The notes beneath the pieces are model-generated. The model did no database searches. It worked only from the letters and a program-made list of their open reading frames with translations, and was not told where the DNA came from. Below, in pieces: positions 54,348 to 63,953 of a stretch of DNA of 64,000 nucleotides. The DNA lies in contig CAJFCJ010000003.1 of assembly GCA_904063045.1 (NCBI GenBank), forward strand, positions 2,094,504 to 2,158,503, in the 5' to 3' direction. The position numbers were made by a program, and so were the translations under genes. Numbering within the stretch: position 1 is the first letter of the stretch; each line of letters opens with the position of its first letter. The DNA is from Dimorphilus gyrociliatus (lineage: Eukaryota > Animalia > Annelida).

Positions 54348-55498
54348 TATCCTAGTCCTAATTGGTCTATAAATAAGATAAGTGGAAATGTCTTAATTGA
54401 TCTTAAATAATAGTGATTTTCAAATTAACAAGGCAGAGAAATAACTTAATCTTTCTCAAGAACTTTATTGCAAATGGAATAGGTACAGTAATAACATTAA
54501 TCTAATAATAGCAGATCGGTTTAGGCACAGATTTCGTACCAAGGTGATAAAAAGCGCCATCTATAGCATATCAATTGTTTATGCAAAAATAAAAACAACA
54601 AAGTTTAATTAATGAAATAAACAAGGGAAATGTCATGAAGAACTTCACTTCGTTATTCGGAAAATTTCTAAGAAAGGAACGAAAGGGGCAATAACATTAG
54701 CTTTAACTTATTAAATTCCTTTAGATTTAGTTTACATTCGTGCTAATTAAATCTCACGGGGAAGGTAGATATCATTTCCAATTATTTAAATATTATTAAT
54801 AAAGCATGATATATAATAATAATAGATAAAATTCGTGAGAAAGTGAAATAAACTCACCATTTATTGCGAACTGCAAACGTTTCTGCCCGATATTTCCAGT
54901 GCAAGAAACTTTGCAGCCGGCTCAGATCATCTAAAAATAGACGATTCGTTCCCTATTTACTTTCGTACACGCGAGCGCTTTACCCCAAAAAGAAGGTTCC
55001 AATGTAGATTCTACTTTTTTATTTTTGTTATAAATTTTGTTATTTAAAGTATTAAATTTTTATCAGATAAAATAGAAGTTTGTATATTTTCATTTATAAT
55101 GGAAAAGATTCATTCTATATAAATTTCTTTCATTATCTCTTTTTTTGTTGGCAGGGATTCAGTCGTAAGTTGAAAATAGAAAATAGACTATTTCTATTAG
55201 AAAAATTGTATACAAAGTAGGGAATATTTTCAAAATAATACCTGGATCTCTTTTGCAGTTGTCGGTAATCAATTAACTGGAAAAGAGGCAATAATATATT
55301 TTCTTTTCTATATTCCTAGTGGTTTATTTTTCTTTGCTCTCTCTTTTTTAATAATAACGATTTTGAAAGGCAAAATGTAAAATTATCAATATGAAAATGA
55401 TCATTTATTGTTGTGTCAGTAATATACTTTTTAATGTAGTATTGTGCATTAATAATGAAAACAATCGTTTTCATTTCATAAATCAGACTAAGGTTATA

Positions 55499-57183
55499 AT
55501 GCCTTACATACTGCACCGCCACCCACCGAGCACCCTAGACTTTCTTTTTACAGACAGCCGCGCCACACTACCTCGCGAAAATTCTCTAAGAATAAAGAAC
55601 GAAGAATTCTATATTAGCTGGAAAAGAATGGCAGAGTCGAACGATAACGATAGCGAAGAAATGGAAACTACCCTTCAACCTCCTTCGGCCGTATCGAAAA
55701 CGGATAGCTGCGAATCTGGTATTTTTAGCGATATTTCACCTCCTGTAAAAGCTGAACAAAAGTCAGAGGAGGATGTCGACGATATAATTCAAAGGGTACT
55801 AAGCAATCATAGGTACGTTTTCAAAGTCATTAATAACTATTTACTAGCCTATTTGAACAGAAACTTAATAATAATAATGATCAATTAAATTATACGATCT
55901 TCTCGAAGATTCTCCCAAGTGCAATACTCTTTTAGCATCTAACTGATAAGTTAGTTTATTCAAAACTAGGCTGCTCTTCCTGAGTTTAAACTTTCCTAGA
56001 AGTACCAAAAAGATTGATTATTAGATATTTCGGAATATTTTCTCCAAAAACGCCATCTGTCAGCAATCTGGCAGACAGACCATTAGCAAACAGGTATCAA
56101 ATTATACTCAGACAGGAAACAATTGTTATTTTACTGAATATTAATAGAAAATTCATAAAATAGCGAAGCAACTTATTGCACTTTGAGGCATCTTTTGTGA
56201 GTTGTCTACAGCATCTTTAAGTTCAAGGCAACTTGTTCTTTACAGTATTTTCTTAGACATAAAAAAAAGTCTATAAAGCTTGATAAACTATATTATTTAC
56301 TAGGTGTACTATAACAAGGCTTTTATATCTAGTTTTTAGGAGTTACGTTCATAAACATAGACAGAATTCTATTTTGAAAGAATATAACAACGGCTTACAA
56401 TAATATCTTTCTTACAGACAAACGTTTTCTGATGAGAGTGCCATCTATCGTCGACGCCGCTTTCAAAGAACGTCTGAATTTGAGGAGGAAGAAGTTTTCG
56501 AAGATCGATACGATAATGGCATGGATTATATACCGGATGATGAATTCATACCAAAGAAGGGACTTCATACAGAAGATGTCGTTCGTGAGCGGAGTGCAAG
56601 CATAAGAAATGTCGTAGATGATCAATCGAAAGTTCTAAAGAGACTTAAATCTGTAGGTGAGAGTTTTGATGAACTGCAAGATGAGATTCGCTCAATTAAA
56701 CAACAAATGTGGGAGAATGAAGCAAGACGGGCAGTCTTTGATGATGAATTTAATAATTTAAATATGAGTGAAGAAGAAGATGAACACTTTCGACAAGAAG
56801 TTCGTCAAAATATATACCGGCCTAGACCTTCATACAAATACGTAGAGGATGACTATGATACATCTTACAAGTCGAGAAATTATAGACTGGAAAGAGCCGA
56901 AACATTTGACGTTGGAAACAGATACGCCACAACATCTTTTGCGCCGCAAAGCAACAATTACTCGAGAGCCACGAATTCTTTAATGAGATCAACGTCGTTT
57001 CAAAATTCCGAAGAATTCCCTTCAAACCAACTCGGCAAATATCCAAGTGATAAATGGAGTTTTGACAGTAGATTTTTAAAAAAAGTTCGAGAGGCTAAAG
57101 CATCGGGAGAGTATAAACCAAAGAAGCCGTTTCAGTCGAGATTTCTTCGCAAGACTACTGCTAATGATTCTCCTGCAGAATAA
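55499..57183 (+). CDS. Uncharacterised protein with coiled coil and repeated F-x-SRFL motif; N-terminus uncertain
   Basis: Exon 55487-55812 (phase-2 end) joins exon 56418-57183 in frame, with an optional 69-nt phase 2-2 exon at 56025-56093. The start could be 55499, 55628 or the upstream exons at 51648 (see findings). Confidence 0.7.
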
Positions 57184-57260
57184 TAATATAATATTATTAT
57201 TAATTATGATAATGATTATGATAACAATAGTTTGTAATAATAATAATAATAATAGTTAAG
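57181..57260. repeat. Imperfect (AAT)n tract immediately after a stop codon
   Basis: taataata...gataat units, direct reading. Confidence 0.7.
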
Positions 57261-57590
57261 ATAAATAATGACAAGAAAGTTTTTTCCGACTTTTTGAAAT
57301 ATAAATAATAAAATTGAAAGAATTTAAAATAATGTCTTATTTGCTTTCGTCATCTTCCTATTTTGAAAGTTTCAAAACTTTTATTTGTTTTTATTAAAAA
57401 AAAATAATATCAGTATTTTTTTATTTTAGTATAAAGAAATAATTATATATTTTGCAAAAATTAGTGTTATTTTATGTTCTTTGTTTTCATTAGCCTTTTA
57501 CTTAATGTTTATTTAAGTTTCTTCAATTTCCTTTTCACAAGTTTAGCCATTTTCCATAAATTCTTTTCCCGTAAATCAAATTATCCCGTT

Positions 57591-57845
57591 TTAGCATCCA
57601 CCTCTAGCAGACGAACGAACTTTTCTCGTTCCCTTTCGTCCTCTAGATCGCTTTTTCATAACAGCTGACCGCTTCTTTCGCTTTACGGTTCTTCTCTTGG
57701 TAGTACGTGCACTTTTTCGGCCTCCTGATGCTCTCTTACTTGATGATCGTTTTCTAGTCTTTCTATTATTATTGATGTTGTTCTGCCTGATTCGTTGAGC
57801 TGAGCCAATAGTTTGGGCAATTTTTAGAGCTTCTAAATTAGCCAT
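57591..57845 (-). CDS. Protamine-like / sperm nuclear basic protein candidate (84 aa)
   Basis: Single-exon ORF with 18 R + 13 K of 84 residues (hand count), 10 S and a single acidic residue. R/K clusters are separated by S/G/T/A, and an AATAAA lies downstream near 57511. Confidence 0.72.
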   Translation of the reverse strand: MANLEALKIAQTIGSAQRIRQNNINNNRKTRKRSSSKRASGGRKSARTTKRRTVKRKKRSAVMKKRSRGRKGTRKVRSSARGGC

Positions 57846-58361
57846 CTCTCAAAGATTTTTTTAAATTTTGATCTAGCTAACCGTCTCTTTAGTCTTTGAA
57901 TATTAATATTAAACTGAATTTTATAAGTTAAATTCAAATTTAATAATTAATTATTGACGTAAATTTTGACAAATAATTGCATTTTTAAACTTTTTTTACT
58001 CTTTCTCACCGGAATTGATTTATTAGCGTTTCCTGTTGTAGATTAGTTTGTACTATAGAACAAGTAGTTATAGGTTATCTAATGGCCTACAATAAGTAAA
58101 ACTCTTTACTTCGGGATCTTATAGTGTAATTTGGTGTCCTATACTGTAACCGAATATTGCTTAGCAAGGATATAAATGTGCGAAGTGCAGCGCATTCTTC
58201 TTTTGCACACCACTCTTAACCTTTTTGCAGATTTTTGCGCACGAATCGAAAGCGCTGGCCAACCGCAACAGTCCGTTTGAGCAGTAGATGCAGTAAAAGG
58301 TGAGTCTCGGTCGAAAAAAAAATCGTTTCTTTCCGATTGAATTGGAGGTTCAAACAGTAAG

Positions 58362-60263
58362 ATGGAAGCCGTCGCCGCCTTCTATGGTGTGTACGTACTA
58401 TTCGCTGCCATCGATATTCTTCTAATTATATTTCGAACGCTTCGATGTCGTTGCGGTAAACGACCGGAAAAGGAAAAATTTCGAAGAGGCAGCGTTTCAC
58501 ACTCTTGGAAGGAGGCGACGTTGGTTGAAGAGCGCGATAGGATGGCTAAGCAATACGAGAGGGAAGCTGAGGAAAAATTAAAAAGTACATTTAGTTGTAA
58601 TTTATGCACAGAATTTTTCGTAAACTTCGTTCCCACCAGGAGCGATAGATGAAGCGACTGCAACGTCTGCAAAGAGCAACCGGTCGAGTAAGGTATTTCG
58701 CCTCCAGTTCAATCGGCAGATGGCGTACACATAATTATTTTTAGTTGAGAGTAAACGTTGTAAAAGTTAATAGCAAAAGTATTTAAAAGCTGCTTTAGAT
58801 CTTAGTTATTGAAAAAATTTATATATCTAATATACTGTATAGCACTAAATAACAGATGATATGATTGAAAAGACTATAAGCAAACTGTTTAACTTTTAGA
58901 TAGATGAATAGATAAGTGTAATTTTTTTGTACATATAATTAAAGACAGAAAAACATCTTAATATAGTTTCGCCATTGAAAACACATGATTAGAGACTCTT
59001 TAAAAATGCGAACAATATGAATTTTAGAGTTTAATGAGAGATATTAACATTTGAATTATGATTTTTATAACTACGGTACGTTGGAAGGAATAGAAAGGAG
59101 AATAAAAAGCTAAAAAAAAGAAACTCTTTCTTCGCTCATATTTCAATTAGATGAAGCGTCTATACTTATTTAGGTAGAAGAAAAGCGCAATAAACTATTC
59201 AATAAACACACCGGTTGTCTTGATCGATTTTAATTTTTATTCCATCGCTCTGCAGCACCTAGCTAGAGACGATTCTGTAGACGTGATGGAAGAAAATTGG
59301 GTTGGAGAGCAACTCTGTTGCCATAACTGCGAAAAGTCTCTTACTGGACATCGTTATATTCTAAGGGAAGAAAATCCTTTCTGCATACAATGTTACGAAA
59401 GCCTATTCGCGAATTCTTGCGAGGAATGTAAGAGTCCAATTGGATGCGACTCAAAAGATCTTTCCTATAAGGAACGTCACTGGCATGAGAAATGTTTTAA
59501 ATGTTCAGATTGTGAAAATTCGCTGGTTGATCAACCTTTCGCATCGAAAAATGAAAAGCTATACTGCGCTGATTGCCATGATAAGAATTTTGCTGCGAGA
59601 TGCGACGGATGTTCGGATATTTTCCGAGCCGGTATGAAGAAGTTTGAATATAAGGGCAAGCAGTGGCATGAGCAATGCTTTACCTGTAAATCATGCCAGC
59701 AACCGATAGGTAGAAAAAAATATGACTAATGCATTATTTATTTATAAACTTGATTATTTATTAAATAGGTAACAAGTCGTTTATACCGAGAGAAGGTGAA
59801 ACGGTCTGTGTTCCTTGTTACGAGGAGCATTTTGCGCAAAGGTGCTTAAAATGTAATGGTGTCATCAACAAGGGTGGCATAACCTACAAGGGAACGCCTT
59901 ACCATAGAGACTGCTTTACCTGCACTCATTGCTCGAAGATTTTAGCTGGAGAGAAGTTTACTTCTAGAGAGGAGCAACCCTATTGTGCTGACTGTTTCGG
60001 TGAACTTTTCGCCAAGAAATGCTGCAAGTGCTCTAAGCCCATTACAGGTGACAAAACTTTATTAAACTTTATTGAATGCTTTTGTATATCTGCTTATTTT
60101 TATTTGATATAAAGGCTTGGGTGGAACGAAATTTATCTCTTTCGAAGAAAGACATTGGCATAGCGATTGCTTTAACTGCTATAAATGCAATGCTTCTTTA
60201 GTCGGTAGAGGTTTCCTTACCGATGGTGATGATATCCTCTGCCCGGAATGCGGACGAGCCTAG
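58362..60263 (+). CDS. FHL2: Four-and-a-half LIM domains protein (FHL2/limpet-like), with a TM-anchored long isoform and a soluble isoform starting at 59286
   Basis: Exons 59256-59709, 59769-60047 and 60115-60263 encode a half LIM (CHNC..CIQC) plus four LIM domains ending GLGGTKFISFEERHWHSDCF..CPEC. Upstream exons 58362-58584 and 58640-58692 splice in frame. Confidence 0.92.
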
Positions 60264-61081
60264 GCTTTTGGAGAATGCGGAAATAGAATTTTTCCATATA
60301 TCCTTGCTCTTTTTTGTCGCTGCTGTGACTTTGCGTTCGTAGTTCTTTGCTTTAAAAAAAATTATATATGATATTGGAAAGCGCTGAAATTCTTAACCTA
60401 TGCAAATGAAAAATTCATGATAGTAATTGTGCTGAAACTGGAATTTTTGTCGATGATTAGCTTTTAAAGACTTTGAAATATAGAAAAAGATGAATAAAAG
60501 AAACATTAGAAAGAAAGCTTGTTGATTTTGTTTTGTTATTGTTCTTTCTTTTAGGTTTCTTAATAGCATTAAGTCTTTACGATAAACAAGACAATAATAA
60601 TAGCAAGTAATATCTTTTCTTCTTTCTCTCTTCCATATTCATCATAGATAACAAACTCAAATATCAGCGAACAAATAAAAAGAAACTGGTGTACAGAAAT
60701 ATATTTTTTATATTTGGTGAATCCAATAACCTTACGTTTTTTTTTTGAGCTAACTTTTCTTTTCTCTTTACAAAGAGTTAAACAGGAAAAGACACGGCTT
60801 GTAATTATTATACAGAGTTGAGTTAGTCTTTTATTTTGTTCTTGATCCAAGAAACAGGGATTTTTTTTATATAATACATATAATTATTAAATAGATGGGG
60901 ACGCGATATTGGAAGCTGGCCGATCCTGGGGAAGAAAGGTGCACCTACTTTTTTCCATCAAGCAAAAAATAAAAAAACAGATGAGAAATGAACCAAAAAC
61001 GTACGCAGTTTTTTGCTTACGATACGACAATATTTGCCTAGTATTGCTTCAATTAAGTAAAGTCAAAAAGAGAACCAGTTT

Positions 61082-63953
61082 CTATGAGCAAAACGTCGAG
61101 AAATCTTCCTGCCGACGCGGAGGAGCTGAGAAGGTGTGATAAAGTCTCTCCTTCTCCGCATAGAGATTACTCTGTTTCAGCGGGTTGTAAGTTGCCACCC
61201 TTATTTTTGGCGATTCGGTTGGTGAGTTAAATTTAGTAAGATCTGCACTGTATCGTCTGCTGTACAACGATTCGTTGCCTAGTTTAGAACCATAGATCTG
61301 CTCCACATTCAAGCAAGAATTATACGCTGGTCTTGCTTGATTTAAATTCGATTTATTCGGAACCGATGAAGCAATCGGTTCCAGTGAGATTAGTTCTTCA
61401 GCAGGTCCATCTCCGGCATCTGAACCAATTAAGCTCCTCACAAAGTAGGAGTTTGAACTCTTTGTCGCCATTAGCTTCCGTTTAGGAGTTGATAGCGTGC
61501 TGGCGCCGTCTAACGGTTGAACGTCGGCTTCGAAATCGTAGTGGACACTCGGCGAATTCATTCTATCGACCGACTTTGGGTAGAGTTCGATCGTTTCCTG
61601 TACACGACCATAATCGCTTTCTGTATGAGACGGACTGGTCCTTTTGATGAGGTATTGCAGTCGAGAGCCGTCTCTCGACAAAGAATTTTGTTGATTGACC
61701 ATATTCTGTTTCCTCATATATTCCATAGAAGCCCTCGAAAGGTAGGCTGTTTCCCTGACCGATCCACGACTCATTATTCCCCTGCATTTTCTTTGCCTGT
61801 AGGGATTTTTAAAAAGGGAACGTTAGAGGGAAGTAATTAGGGCATTCGACTGAAATAGATGGTACTGATACTCGAAAGAACAAAACAGAAAAGTATCATT
61901 GGAGAAAGATACTTACTTTCTCAAGCAAATCATTCCAACCGTCAGAATTACGACGCTAAGAACAATAGCTGCTCCAATAATGATAGCGATCCAAATCCCA
62001 TGCGGTAGGGCTAATTTTCCAACGGTCAACTTACTTCTGGCTGTACATTGAAATGAAAGTACAATATATAGTAAACTTAAAGTCACGATCTAATCCTTAA
62101 ATCGTAAACTTACCGTATGTACAGTTTCCAGTTGGTTTCAGCCAATGTGTTCCATTGCAATATCTCGTCCATGTGTAATCCGTATAATTACAGCCCATTT
62201 TCATCTTTTGACCTTTTCTCTCCGCCCAACCATGCTCTGGAGGTGGTAGGTTTGGGCATCCCCGAGCTTTTGATATGTAGTAATTATTATATAATTGGCT
62301 AAAAATGGAACTAAACAAATAAAATGTTACCAAAGCACCTCTTACTATCACATTTTAAAGAACTTTAAGTATTATAGAGATGATAGAAGAGGAGAGAAAA
62401 ACGAAAGCCAAGTCATCCGAAAAAATATACAACGACTAATTTACCCTATAAGTGTCAAAAAAGACGACCCCCGAGGTCTTTTGAACTGAGGCCATATTAC
62501 TTAGCGGTGGAACTTTTGGATTTGGTTCAAAGAAATATTTTTAAAAGTGGTATTAAAAGTTCTGCTTCCGATCAAGTAATTCCTAAATCTTTCAACTTAA
62601 CGAACGTTAAAAGGCTATTTAAAATGTAATAGAGAATAATGATAAATATATGATGATTTAGTAAACTGCCTAAAGCGGAACAACTCCTCCTCAATCAGCG
62701 CAAATGCCATTTCAATTATCTGCAACAAGCGCCATCTAGGTATCTTCCGTGCCGGAACGAATCAAGTGGAAGAGGTCGGTTCGGTGGGGTCACAACTCAG
62801 TAGAAGGCCATTTGCGTGATATACTTCGCTTTACTTAACGTGGCTTTTCATCTTTAGTGTTCTAGGTCTATGTAGTAGGATATTTTTCACCGGAGCGCGG
62901 TAATTATCGAGCCGCCAGGTACTAAAGCATACATAAAATACTCATATACAAAATAAACGAAAGCACATATGCACACATTGTATAGACGTCGACGAGGTGA
63001 CAGCTAACTGAGTGACTCACTGCCACATATTATTATACAAATGTAAATATAAAAGAATATAGAGTATACTGTATATATAGGCTATTAAGACGCACACACG
63101 TGTGTGTATAGTATTATAAATATATATTAGTATAGAAATGTACCCTCCATGCATTATACTGTATATTCTTCATATTATATATTTAAACATTCGACAAGAG
63201 TGAAACTGTGAGAAAGTACGATAGGAAAAATCAACATTTATGTACGCGAGTATAATGACGAACGTCGGCGGTTATTCGGTGCCTTGGCGTTTTATAATCT
63301 AAGCCTTTAAATCCTAAGGTGCTTACCTTCGTAACGTAATAGGAAGTCGGTTGGGGTAAGGATAATCACTTTGATCCTATCGCCTGACGACTCGTACGTC
63401 TGATTCTTTCGGCAGAGATTCCTAGGACGTTTACCCTCTTCTTCAACAACCGCTATTGGTGCACAATTTTCACGATGGTTAACATCTCTTCCCTTAAGTC
63501 TCTCGAAAGTTAATAGTATCTTACGCCCCTTTTCCGCTTTTAGTTTTATAGGACATTTAAAACTGTCTTTAAATTTTTTAATTGTTCTTGTTGACAAATA
63601 TCGACTGTTTGTAGTCGCGGCGAAATTGGCATCCTTTGGTCTCATTTTGTCACAGAAATATGGTGAATTGGGAACGCAGTTATAGGTTAACTGTAACTCG
63701 CAGAAGAGATCTTTACACGGATTCAAATCGCCAAAATCATCAACAACTGAAATCTTGCAGTTGTTCAGCCCCGTACAACTTTCGTGTAGTCTATCCAAAA
63801 CATCAACACTGCATTTCTCTTCTGTGCTCGACATTTTAATACAATTATTTGTTCTAGTTCTGCCGTATATTGCCGTTCGGAAGACGAATACCCTACTCCT
63901 AGGGCAAGTTCGATCAAACTTACCACGCCAGCATACGTCCGTATGATTTCTTT
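61082..63953 (-). CDS. Type I membrane protein with SUEL (galactose/rhamnose-binding) lectin, CUB-like, sushi/CCP and TM domains and a long Ser-rich tail; N-terminus beyond the window
   Basis: Exon 63953-63327 (CPRS..AIYGR..C..DVLDRLHESCTG..DLNPC..LTYNC, then CUB-like CPIKLKAEKGRKILLTF). Exon 62266-62114 (CPNLPPPEHG..C..C..W..C, sushi). Exon 62040-61917 (TM) and exon 61796-61082. All phases are compatible. Confidence 0.85.

Follow-up and report, generated by a model that had tools for sequence, protein, structure and literature searches.

Four-and-a-half-LIM (FHL) proteins have mainly been studied as soluble scaffolds that shuttle among adhesion sites, sarcomeres, and the nucleus. Alternative splicing of FHL1 generates the isoforms FHL1A, FHL1B/SLIMMER, and FHL1C/KyoT2 with altered localization, which differ at the C-terminus with respect to nuclear import and export signals and RBP-J binding and which remain soluble. 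To our knowledge, FHL proteins reach membranes only via partners, e.g., integrin tails or, for LIM-9, the protein CPNA-1. Outside this family, S-COMT and MB-COMT represent a soluble and a membrane-bound protein that are distinguished by an N-terminal extension, and N-terminal signal anchors occur in microsomal P450s and in Tom20. The recruitment of C. elegans LIM-9 to integrin adhesion sites close to the membrane depends on CPNA-1, a protein with a predicted N-terminal transmembrane domain (PMC3583664). At the level of RNA, a modulation of alternative splicing by conserved long-range structures has been reported for Drosophila (PMC2724269) and for conserved complementary regions in human (PMC8052449).

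The locus presented here, which is located in a window of 64,000 nucleotides (the whole stretch of DNA that was analyzed), is the FHL gene (four-and-a-half-LIM protein, Limpet/LIM-9/FHL2 type) of the miniature marine worm Dimorphilus gyrociliatus. Its FHL body of 283 amino acids comprises an N-terminal half LIM domain, four complete LIM domains, and no other domain, as is typical of this family with its length of about 280 amino acids, and thus has the same layout as FHL1, FHL2, FHL3, FHL5, Limpet, and LIM-9. In contrast to these family members, the D. gyrociliatus protein can be preceded by an extension that adds a predicted transmembrane helix. The coding sequence of the body is distributed over three exons:

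59286 to 59709, plus strand: first FHL coding exon with the ATG at 59286, the N-terminal half LIM domain, LIM1, LIM2, and the start of LIM3.
59769 to 60047, plus strand: second FHL coding exon with a LIM domain; joints present in the RNA runs X1, X15, and X3.
60115 to 60512, plus strand: last FHL exon with a LIM domain; coding up to the stop codon at 60261-60263 according to the list of open reading frames, with the 3' UTR making up the remainder; RNA contigs extend to 60496-60512.

The 3' end of the first coding exon is marked in the RNA contigs by the joint 59705/59765 (cut +4). Pfam searches of the window detected the half LIM domain PF25076 (FHL2/3 type) at 59256-59726 (E value of 3.6e-15, 56 bits, cutoff of 35) and repeated matches to PF00412 on all three FHL exons. 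The full-length orthologue of a relative (P0005) likewise has 283 amino acids, with five PF00412 stretches and a PF25076 score of 85.6 bits, and is 96% identical to the window over the first FHL exon and 99% identical over the second one, while the first-exon identity to invertebrate FHL2-type proteins amounts to 55 to 79%. Human FHL2 is the closest solved structure for the FHL body (2miu; E value of 1e-39), and residues 8-282 are tiled by PDB matches to the LIM domains of FHL2, FHL3, FHL1, and FHL5. Among the proteins of 101 to 320 amino acids covered by the protein search with FHL, whose upper limit was 320 amino acids, none was 100% identical.

One 5' region of this single gene gives rise to two mRNAs, which probably encode a soluble and a predicted membrane-anchored form. 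All of the RNA evidence consists of assembled contigs, and rare variants get dropped in assembly. The contigs stem from run X15, which is identical to the window, and from run X3, which represents a relative with about 92 to 95% identity. The joints 58584/58640 and 58692/59256, both of the GT..AG type, are present in X15 and X3 and hence in two organisms. Together with the sequence, they agree with the ATG at 58362, the 55-nt intron at 58585-58639, and the phase 0 mini exon at 58640-58692 that had been proposed in an initial annotation of this DNA, and they confirm the in-frame fusion to the FHL exon at 59256 suggested there. The anchored form is covered in X3 by a single contig of 1468 nt (record 20; blocks 58286-58584, 58640-58690, 59254-59704, 59764-60045, and 60113-60496), which begins upstream of the hydrophobic exon's coding part, includes the entire FHL body, and ends in the 3' UTR, and the sole X3 contig assembled across the 5' end corresponds to this form. 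The third joint expected from the initial annotation, 58299/59256, was also found. This skip joint is present in X15, where its short side comprises only 28 nt (short sides of the X15 junction contigs are just 28 to 29 nt), and in the mRNA contig L135 of a relative, which reads AGTAAAAG directly followed by CACCTAGC, where the part to the left of the joint is just 8 nt long and adjoins an adapter.

The switch is an alternative choice of donors, i.e., a consensus donor at 58299 versus weak donors at 58584 and 58692. For the soluble form, donor 58299 is spliced to 59256 across an intron of 956 nt, and translation from the ATG at 59286 would yield the ordinary FHL protein of 283 amino acids. For the anchored form, donor 58299 is bypassed, the first exon extends to the weak donor at 58584, and the 55-nt intron is removed; the mini exon 58640-58692 is then joined to 59256, so that the ATG at 58362 would start a protein of 385 amino acids consisting of 102 additional residues and the complete FHL. 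The exons joined in silico fit this layout, with 223 plus 53 nt forming 92 codons in phase 0, followed by 10 linker codons (59256-59285) and the ATG at 59286, and the joined frame is open over 385 codons to the stop at 60261-60263. The nucleotides around the ATG at 58362 (A at -3 and G at +4) are favorable for initiation, and an in-frame TGA precedes it at 58338-58340. The splice sites read AAA/GTACAT at the donor 58584/58585, CCACCAG at the acceptor ending at 58639, and CTGCAG at the acceptor ending at 59255. The expectation that skipping of 58358-58692 produces the soluble FHL was correct regarding the joint 58299/59256, but the mechanism consists of alternative donors and a mini exon rather than two skipped cassettes. 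A 58-nt intron at 58300-58357 that had been placed in front of the coding exon was not recovered; record 7 of X15 (58270-58584) and record 20 of X3 (58286-58584) read through it, and no joint 58299/58358 was found. This splice may nevertheless exist as a minor variant, since rare variants are dropped from contigs. The introns of D. gyrociliatus have a median length of 66 bp, and splicing works best at short introns (PMC7854359), which makes the 956-nt intron exceptional. Trans-splicing as a source of depth differences is excluded by the genome paper (PMC7854359).

The 5' region and the alternative block are composed of the following elements, for which identities refer to L014, a syntenic genomic contig of one diverged relative that served as the comparison genome:

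58133 to 58204, plus strand: conserved promoter-like block with TATAAA at 58172-58177; 93% identity.
58205 to 58299, plus strand: shared 5' leader exon (start uncertain) with the consensus donor AAG/GTGAGT; 89% identity.
58300 to 58361, plus strand: dual-use segment, 5' UTR in the anchored mRNA and start of the intron in the soluble one; 93% identity.
58362 to 58584, plus strand: coding part of the extended first exon, M1-K74 plus 1 nt, with the weak donor AAA/GTACAT.
58585 to 58639, plus strand: 55-nt GT..AG intron with joints in X15 and X3; 93% identity and a 1-nt indel.
58640 to 58692, plus strand: 53-nt mini exon encoding R-AIDEATATSAKSNRSSK, with the donor AAG/GTATTT; flanked by joints in both X15 and X3.
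58693 to 59255, plus strand: intron of 563 nt in the anchored isoform, defined by the joint 58692/59256.
59256 to 59285, plus strand: linker HLARDDSVDV, translated as part of the anchored isoform but belonging to the 5' UTR of the soluble one; one synonymous change.

Upstream of the promoter-like block, the identity to L014 is about 50%. Transcription likely starts at about 58200-58210, but the leader may extend further upstream and then include several ATGs; record 6 of X15 spans 57493-58299 unbroken. Neither a joint nor a loose end was seen at 58231, where the initial annotation had placed the start of the exon, and an acceptor at 58230/58231 fed from an upstream exon was dropped as a candidate for the same reason. 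The leader exon contains a two-codon upstream open reading frame (ATGCAGTAA, 58288-58296) that is kept in L014.

The hydrophobic exon has a dN/dS ratio of 0.089 in comparison with L014 (26 synonymous and 14 non-synonymous changes; dS of 0.95); the respective value for the first FHL exon is 0.006. The mini exon is 96% identical, both of its changes are synonymous, and mini exon plus linker together show three synonymous and no non-synonymous changes, which only the fused frame explains. In X3, 17 differences are listed for the exon, 12 of which are synonymous and five conservative according to a hand count. The features kept in the relative include the hydrophobic segment, the central Asp18, the cysteines of the CRC motif, and RRGS. 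Judged by these substitution patterns, the N-terminal extension is protein-coding and under purifying selection. Conservation also extends to the splice sites and to the flanking non-coding sequence, the latter of which is 87 to 93% identical to L014 compared to a background of about 45 to 50%. Within the 563-nt intron it is confined to the two ends (first 43 and last 75 nt), with identities of 0.91, 0.45, and 0.87 for the 5' end, the middle, and the 3' end, respectively.

These data bear on two readings that deny the existence of a functional fusion. The first one regards the hydrophobic frame as a stand-alone small membrane peptide or upstream open reading frame (96 amino acids, 58362-58652) that is translated from unspliced RNA, with FHL always being soluble. 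Such a frame is present in the unspliced sequence, and a gene caller predicted an 86-amino-acid product on the genomic contig of the relative, but both RNA contigs that cover the region splice out the 55-nt intron and fuse the exon in frame to FHL. Moreover, the 1-nt indel in L014 shows that the 55-nt intron is not coding and alters the unspliced tail, which is wholly different between the two species (STFSCNLCTEFF... versus STFLVIYAQYFS) and hence not conserved as a protein, whereas mini exon and linker lack any amino acid change. We therefore regard this reading as largely refuted and very improbable. Of the two outcomes that the initial annotation had named as refuting it, i.e., expression of 58362-58652 solely as a separate, unspliced small frame and absence of the joint 58692/59256, neither was observed. 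A match to zf-C2HE in this non-conserved tail was below the threshold (15.9 bits; cutoff of 30.1) and was discarded. According to the second reading, to which we assign an even slightly lower probability, transcripts with the hydrophobic exon are splicing noise or unproductive isoforms without a protein function. The weakness of both used donors (GTACAT and GTATTT) fits this assumption. It is already contradicted by the selection data, i.e., by the low dN/dS ratio at a saturating dS; furthermore, three lineages (window, X3, and L014) retain an intact anchored frame, the weak donors themselves are conserved, and the X3 contig at the 5' end shows exclusively the anchored form.

The extension of the anchored isoform consists of hydrophobic residues at positions 3-24, a basic juxtamembrane stretch with two conserved cysteines (RTLRCRCGKR), the motif RRGS, a charged helix at 49-73, and the linker. 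The hydrophobic segment of 22 residues reaches a Kyte-Doolittle mean of 2.37 over 19 residues, and its summed energy on the Hessa scale is about 0.1 to 0.3 kcal/mol, i.e., only borderline for insertion because of the central Asp. AlphaFold2 predicted two helices, one at 3-32 and one at 49-73; for residues 1-30, the block-mean pLDDT ranges from 78 to 95. The N flank "ME" has a net charge of 0, and seven K/R face two D/E in the 15-residue C flank, a distribution that is kept in the relative. The virtual absence of an N-terminus, which is uncharged, and the net charge of +5 on the C flank point to a signal anchor that is predicted to be uncleaved and reverse (type III, N-out/C-in); the single N-terminal helix of at least 19 residues and a charge difference in line with the positive-inside rule are as expected for this class. 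A cleaved signal peptide was rejected, given that the hydrophobic region is too long, small residues are missing at -1/-3, and the LIM zinc fingers need the cytosol. With a type III topology, the zinc-binding LIM domains would stay cytosolic and be tethered to the membrane, and their scaffolding activity would be focused on a particular membrane site, e.g., at muscle attachments or other adhesion sites. Membrane insertion, palmitoylation, and PKA phosphorylation of the extension are predictions from its sequence. The sequestration of transcription factors and a release by intramembrane proteolysis, both suggested previously, found no support here.

The helix could be real without being a type III anchor of the endoplasmic reticulum or plasma membrane, and instead represent a mitochondrial outer-membrane signal anchor of the Tom20 type, a monotopic or lipid droplet hairpin, or a partner docking site around Asp18. 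Signal-anchored outer-membrane proteins also combine a short N-terminus with a single hydrophobic helix and a basic C flank, all of which are present in the extension. The conserved Asp in the middle of the helix raises the insertion cost to about 0 kcal/mol, and such a residue typically occurs in helices that associate with a partner; a study on the organization of muscle mitochondrial networks reportedly includes fly Limpet (PMC9636386). The hydropathy, with a mean of 2.37 over 19 residues, is however high and more typical of anchors targeted to the endoplasmic reticulum. We consider an alternative location unlikely. This alternative concerns where a tethered isoform resides and leaves its existence untouched.

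The predicted type III anchor resembles MB-COMT, the P450s, and Tom20 in that an upstream ATG and a hydrophobic extension are placed on an otherwise identical cytosolic body and in that a short N-terminus precedes a single helix with a basic C flank. It differs from them in the unrelated protein family, in an extension whose sequence has no detectable relative, and in the choice between the forms by alternative donors and a mini exon. As for the FHL1 isoforms, alternative splicing of an FHL gene changes the cellular location (here predicted), but the change is N-terminal and adds a predicted membrane anchor. The anchor of CPNA-1 resides on a separate copine-domain protein, whereas that of D. 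gyrociliatus is spliced onto FHL itself, and no homology was detected between the two anchors. The CPNA-1/LIM-9 pair nonetheless offers a plausible purpose for tethering an FHL protein. If true, a conserved FHL isoform with its own anchor would show that constitutive tethering is compatible with function, and a single gene would supply a natural comparison of tethered and free FHL.

The choice between the donors may be linked to two complementary non-coding boxes that bracket the alternative block, with arms 350 nt apart in a region of 1.1 kb:

58324 to 58349, plus strand: box A, 5' arm with the core 58333-58349; invariant in L014 and with no listed difference in X3.
58700 to 58725, plus strand: box B, 3' arm with the core 58700-58716; starts 8 nt after the donor of the mini exon.

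Pairing of the boxes is part of the RNAalifold consensus fold of the window and L014 and of the minimum free energy fold of the 1.1-kb pre-mRNA (58205-59320), and they correspond to the inverted repeat I3 of the window and I7 of L014. The duplex has a predicted energy of -39 kcal/mol, with a core of 17 bp in an interrupted helix of 24 predicted pairs, and this energy was reached by none of 800 dinucleotide shuffles (0/500 and 0/300; z of about -5). The duplex of the minus strand amounts to -28.5 kcal/mol, and four U.G pairs make the helix specific to the plus, i.e., transcribed, strand. These properties suggest an RNA bridge that loops out the alternative block. Pairing of A and B in the pre-mRNA would favor the long-intron splice of the soluble form, and the anchored form would be made when the helix fails to form.

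Alternatively, the boxes could be kept as sites of splicing factors or as an enhancer or silencer, with an incidental complementarity and a donor choice made by proteins or transcription kinetics alone. Compensatory substitutions are absent, as the two genomes do not differ in either arm and X3 has no listed difference in box A, and the conservation could hence reflect protein-binding elements; conservation is likewise seen in intronic stretches that lack an obvious partner, namely the 55-nt intron and the 75 nt at the 3' end of the 563-nt intron. The strength of the core in comparison with the shuffles and the strand specificity conferred by the U.G pairs argue against an incidental complementarity, and the single substitution of box B in L014 (58717 C>T) falls on a predicted bulge, while the changes near box A are located outside the helix. 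We regard this explanation as doubtful, albeit far from negligible. The proposed RNA bridge shares with the long-range cases from Drosophila and human the conserved complementary non-coding boxes around an alternative region and the looping-out geometry. It differs in its occurrence in an annelid with introns of about 60 nt, in an arm that is 5' UTR or intron depending on the isoform, and in the lack of covariation. We know of hardly any work on the regulation of splicing in spiralians, for which this locus provides a compact and testable case of alternative donors connected with a long-range RNA helix. A metagenome scan with the 16-mer common to the boxes was uninformative, yielding more than 120 isolated chance hits but not one contig that carries the two arms together.

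The 74-amino-acid hydrophobic exon has no match in Pfam and no usable match in a feature search of the ESM Atlas. P0001, the genomic open reading frame of the relative, was all that was retrieved when 1.84 billion representatives were searched with HMMER and 5.8 billion clusters by words, and a six-frame search of the organism's own genome revealed no paralogue at E values up to 10. Within the reach of these searches, the exon is without a detectable homologue beyond close relatives. An N-terminal hydrophobic anchor was present in none of 32 FHL homologues of at least 260 amino acids (from a search that returned proteins of up to 320 amino acids), 25 of which carry the half-LIM motif no further than 45 residues from their start. 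Searches of the full-text literature retrieved no description of a transmembrane or signal-anchored FHL or Limpet protein. We tentatively propose, leaning slightly toward doubt, that a lineage-restricted exon makes a soluble FHL an integral membrane protein, which would be the first transmembrane FHL, that a conserved pre-mRNA helix bridging an unusually long intron gates this switch, and that the mid-membrane Asp, the juxtamembrane cysteines, and RRGS make the tether regulatable by partner assembly, acylation, or PKA. Extensions of a different, non-hydrophobic kind that end in ...LIFSGEYTKAM occur in several invertebrate FHL forms.

The FHL locus carries a real, conserved splice switch between a soluble FHL of 283 aa and a 385-aa FHL with a predicted membrane anchor. 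Assembled contigs of four runs were aligned to positions 55200-61100. The contigs of run X15 are identical to the window and leave the middle of the long intron uncovered, which identifies them as RNA, whereas those of run X3 are only about 92-95% identical and therefore stem from a related lineage. Both runs contain the GT..AG joints 58584/58640 and 58692/59256 proposed in the initial annotation, and one X3 contig of 1468 nt (58286-58584, 58640-58690, 59254-59704, 59764-60045, and 60113-60496) unites the hydrophobic and mini exons with the complete FHL in a single assembled transcript. The skip joint 58299/59256, expected for the ordinary soluble FHL, is likewise present in X15 and in L135, an mRNA contig of 1107 nt from another relative; it encodes the 283-aa form, and its exon 1 is 88% identical to that of the window. 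The 5' end of L135 reads ...AGTAAAAG/CACCTAGC..., which is the skip joint rather than the one to the mini exon. The short side of the junction contigs measures 28-29 nt in X15 and only 8 nt in L135, and the contigs are no reliable guide to isoform levels.

From 58362 onward, all splice signals and frames of the initial annotation are present in the sequence:

Exons and splice sites of the FHL locus
58362-58584 (+), hydrophobic exon from its ATG; donor AAA/GTACAT at 58584
58639 (+), acceptor CCACCAG/ of the 55-nt intron
58640-58692 (+), 53-nt mini exon; donor AAG/GTATTT at 58692
59255 (+), acceptor CTGCAG/ of the FHL exon; FHL ATG 59286 follows after ten in-frame codons
59256-59709, 59769-60047, and 60115-60263 (+), body exons of the complete FHL

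The ATG at 58362 has A at -3, G at +4, and an in-frame TGA seven codons upstream, and the anchored form joined in silico stays open for 385 codons. All three body exons match the half LIM (PF25076) or LIM (PF00412) domain, five PF00412 stretches were found in the full-length orthologue of the relative (P0005), and the best solved relative of the FHL body is human FHL2. The published D. gyrociliatus genome measures 73.8 Mb, with a median intron of 66 bp; it lacks trans-splicing and is spliced most efficiently at short introns (PMC7854359), a picture with which the 55- to 67-nt introns of the locus agree.

The 5' end had to be remodeled. A 58-nt intron at 58300-58357 had been proposed, but this segment is retained in both covering contigs (X15, 58270-58584; X3, 58286-58584), and no joint 58299/58358 was reported. 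The mRNA of the anchored form thus reads through the consensus donor AAG/GTGAGT at 58299, and the switch consists in using either this donor or the weak ones further downstream (58584 and 58692). An exon start at 58231 found no support. The block 58133-58204, which contains TATAAA at 58172, shows 93% conservation in L014, the syntenic genomic contig of a diverged relative, compared with about 50% identity further upstream, which suggests a transcription start near 58200-58210. An X15 contig also spans 57493-58299 and may represent the leader of the FHL gene or the minus-strand ORF 57591-57845. This Arg/Lys-rich, "protamine-like" ORF of 84 aa has a 76-aa minus-strand counterpart at the matching place in L014; its region is transcribed, as the X15 contig is unbroken, and the contigs do not give the strand. 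The leader common to both isoforms contains a two-codon upstream ORF (ATG CAG TAA, 58288-58296 [+]), identical in L014, that may affect the translation of both.

The sole database relative of the hydrophobic exon, the ORF P0001, lies on L014 (18.7 kb) in the same gene order. The hydrophobic exon differs from it by 26 synonymous and 14 nonsynonymous changes (dS, 0.95; dN/dS, 0.089), the mini exon plus linker (27 codons) by three synonymous and no nonsynonymous changes, and dN/dS of FHL exon 1 is 0.006. Asp18, Cys29, Cys31, RRGS, and residues 40-59 are unchanged, and helix substitutions are hydrophobic for hydrophobic. A hand count of the X3 differences listed within the hydrophobic exon gave 12 of 17 synonymous and 5 of 17 conservative. 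Synonymous changes are unusually rare in the mini exon plus linker (pS, 0.15 versus 0.54-0.69 in neighboring exons), which hints at an RNA-level constraint. Noncoding identity to L014 is 0.93 for both 58300-58357 and the 55-nt intron; in the long intron it is 0.91 over the first 43 nt, 0.87 over the last 75 nt, and 0.45 in the middle. This pattern is typical of regulated alternative splicing. Reading the hydrophobic exon as a stand-alone small ORF fails because the 55-nt intron of the relative differs by a 1-nt indel, which changes the tail of its unspliced ORF.

The two-species consensus fold pairs 58324-58349 (box A) with 58700-58725 (box B), and the 16- to 17-bp core, CCGATTGAATTGGAGG with CCTCCAGTTCAATCGG, was reported for both genomes as one and the same inverted repeat. 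Segment 58300-58361 and the long intron form a best duplex of -39 kcal/mol, an energy that no shuffle attained (0 of 500 for one side, 0 of 300 for the other; z about -5); owing to four U.G pairs, the minus-strand equivalent has only -28.5 kcal/mol. The helix is also present in the MFE fold of 58205-59320. Its arms are invariant: the sole box B substitution falls on the bulge of the prediction, and changes next to box A are found immediately outside the helix. Box A lies 24 nt downstream of the strong donor 58299 (33 nt for its core) and box B 8 nt downstream of the mini-exon donor, so that their pairing would place the entire alternative block in a loop and reduce the effective length of the 956-nt intron. 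We infer that this would favor the soluble splice, in line with long-range RNA structures known to act on splicing (PMC2724269, PMC8052449). A second inverted repeat kept in both species, 58221-58231/58666-58676 (+) (CTTTTTGCAGA/TCTGCAAAGAG), joins the 5' leader to the mini exon, and a local hairpin, 58563-58579/58612-58628 (+), also found in both (I4 in the window, I14 in L014), has the weak donor 58584 within or close to its loop.

For residues 3-24 of the anchored form (AVAAFYGVYVLFAAIDILLIIF), the Kyte-Doolittle mean over 19 residues is 2.37 and a simple Hessa-scale sum is close to 0 kcal/mol; single-sequence AlphaFold2 places helices at 3-32 and 49-73. The N flank consists of "ME", and the 15 residues after the helix include seven K/R and two D/E. 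Under the established positive-inside and charge-difference rules, this composition predicts an uncleaved N-out/C-in anchor with cytosolic LIM domains. Membrane insertion is likewise a prediction, and palmitoylation and PKA phosphorylation are putative at the motif level.

The hydrophobic exon has no paralogue in the D. gyrociliatus genome (77.9 Mb, 349 contigs); 1.84 billion representative proteins yielded no match beyond P0001, and the ESM Atlas yielded none. None of the FHL homologues of up to 320 aa found in many invertebrates bears an N-terminal anchor; some have nonhydrophobic N-terminal extensions, so that alternative N termini are a normal feature of the family. Six such homologues from nematodes, arthropods, and other invertebrates (P0015, P0017, P0023, P0026, P0027, and P0046) share the end motif ...(L/I)IF(S/A/N)(G/S)(E/D)YT(K/R/S)(A/G)M directly before the usual start Met, and protostome FHL genes may thus have carried upstream coding sequence in frame from early on. 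Full-text literature searches found no transmembrane FHL. In Caenorhabditis elegans, CPNA-1, a protein with a transmembrane domain predicted at its N terminus, brings the FHL protein LIM-9 to membrane-proximal adhesion sites (PMC3583664); there the anchor is on a separate recruiting protein, whereas in D. gyrociliatus FHL itself would be tethered, for which the LIM-9 recruitment provides a plausible purpose. D. gyrociliatus has two further FHL-like paralogues, at G000:C8:474393-475124 (-) and G000:C7:1213906-1214978 (+), and the genome-wide search placed the hydrophobic exon near neither; the C8 paralogue is a 250-aa intronless ORF 100% identical to an unnamed D. gyrociliatus protein at NCBI.

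A separate gene lies upstream (55259-57183 [+]), for which an X15 contig splices 55810/56416 across a 605-nt GT..AG intron. Its ORF 56521-57183 (+) (220 aa; syntenic in L014 4362-4856) is acidic, looks coiled-coil-like, and matched no Pfam family above threshold. Downstream, the 230-aa ORF 61082-61774 (-), without a Pfam match, is syntenic in L014 8569-9261, and the 175-aa ORF 63307-63834 (-), syntenic in L014 10729-11253, has a subthreshold SUEL-lectin match.
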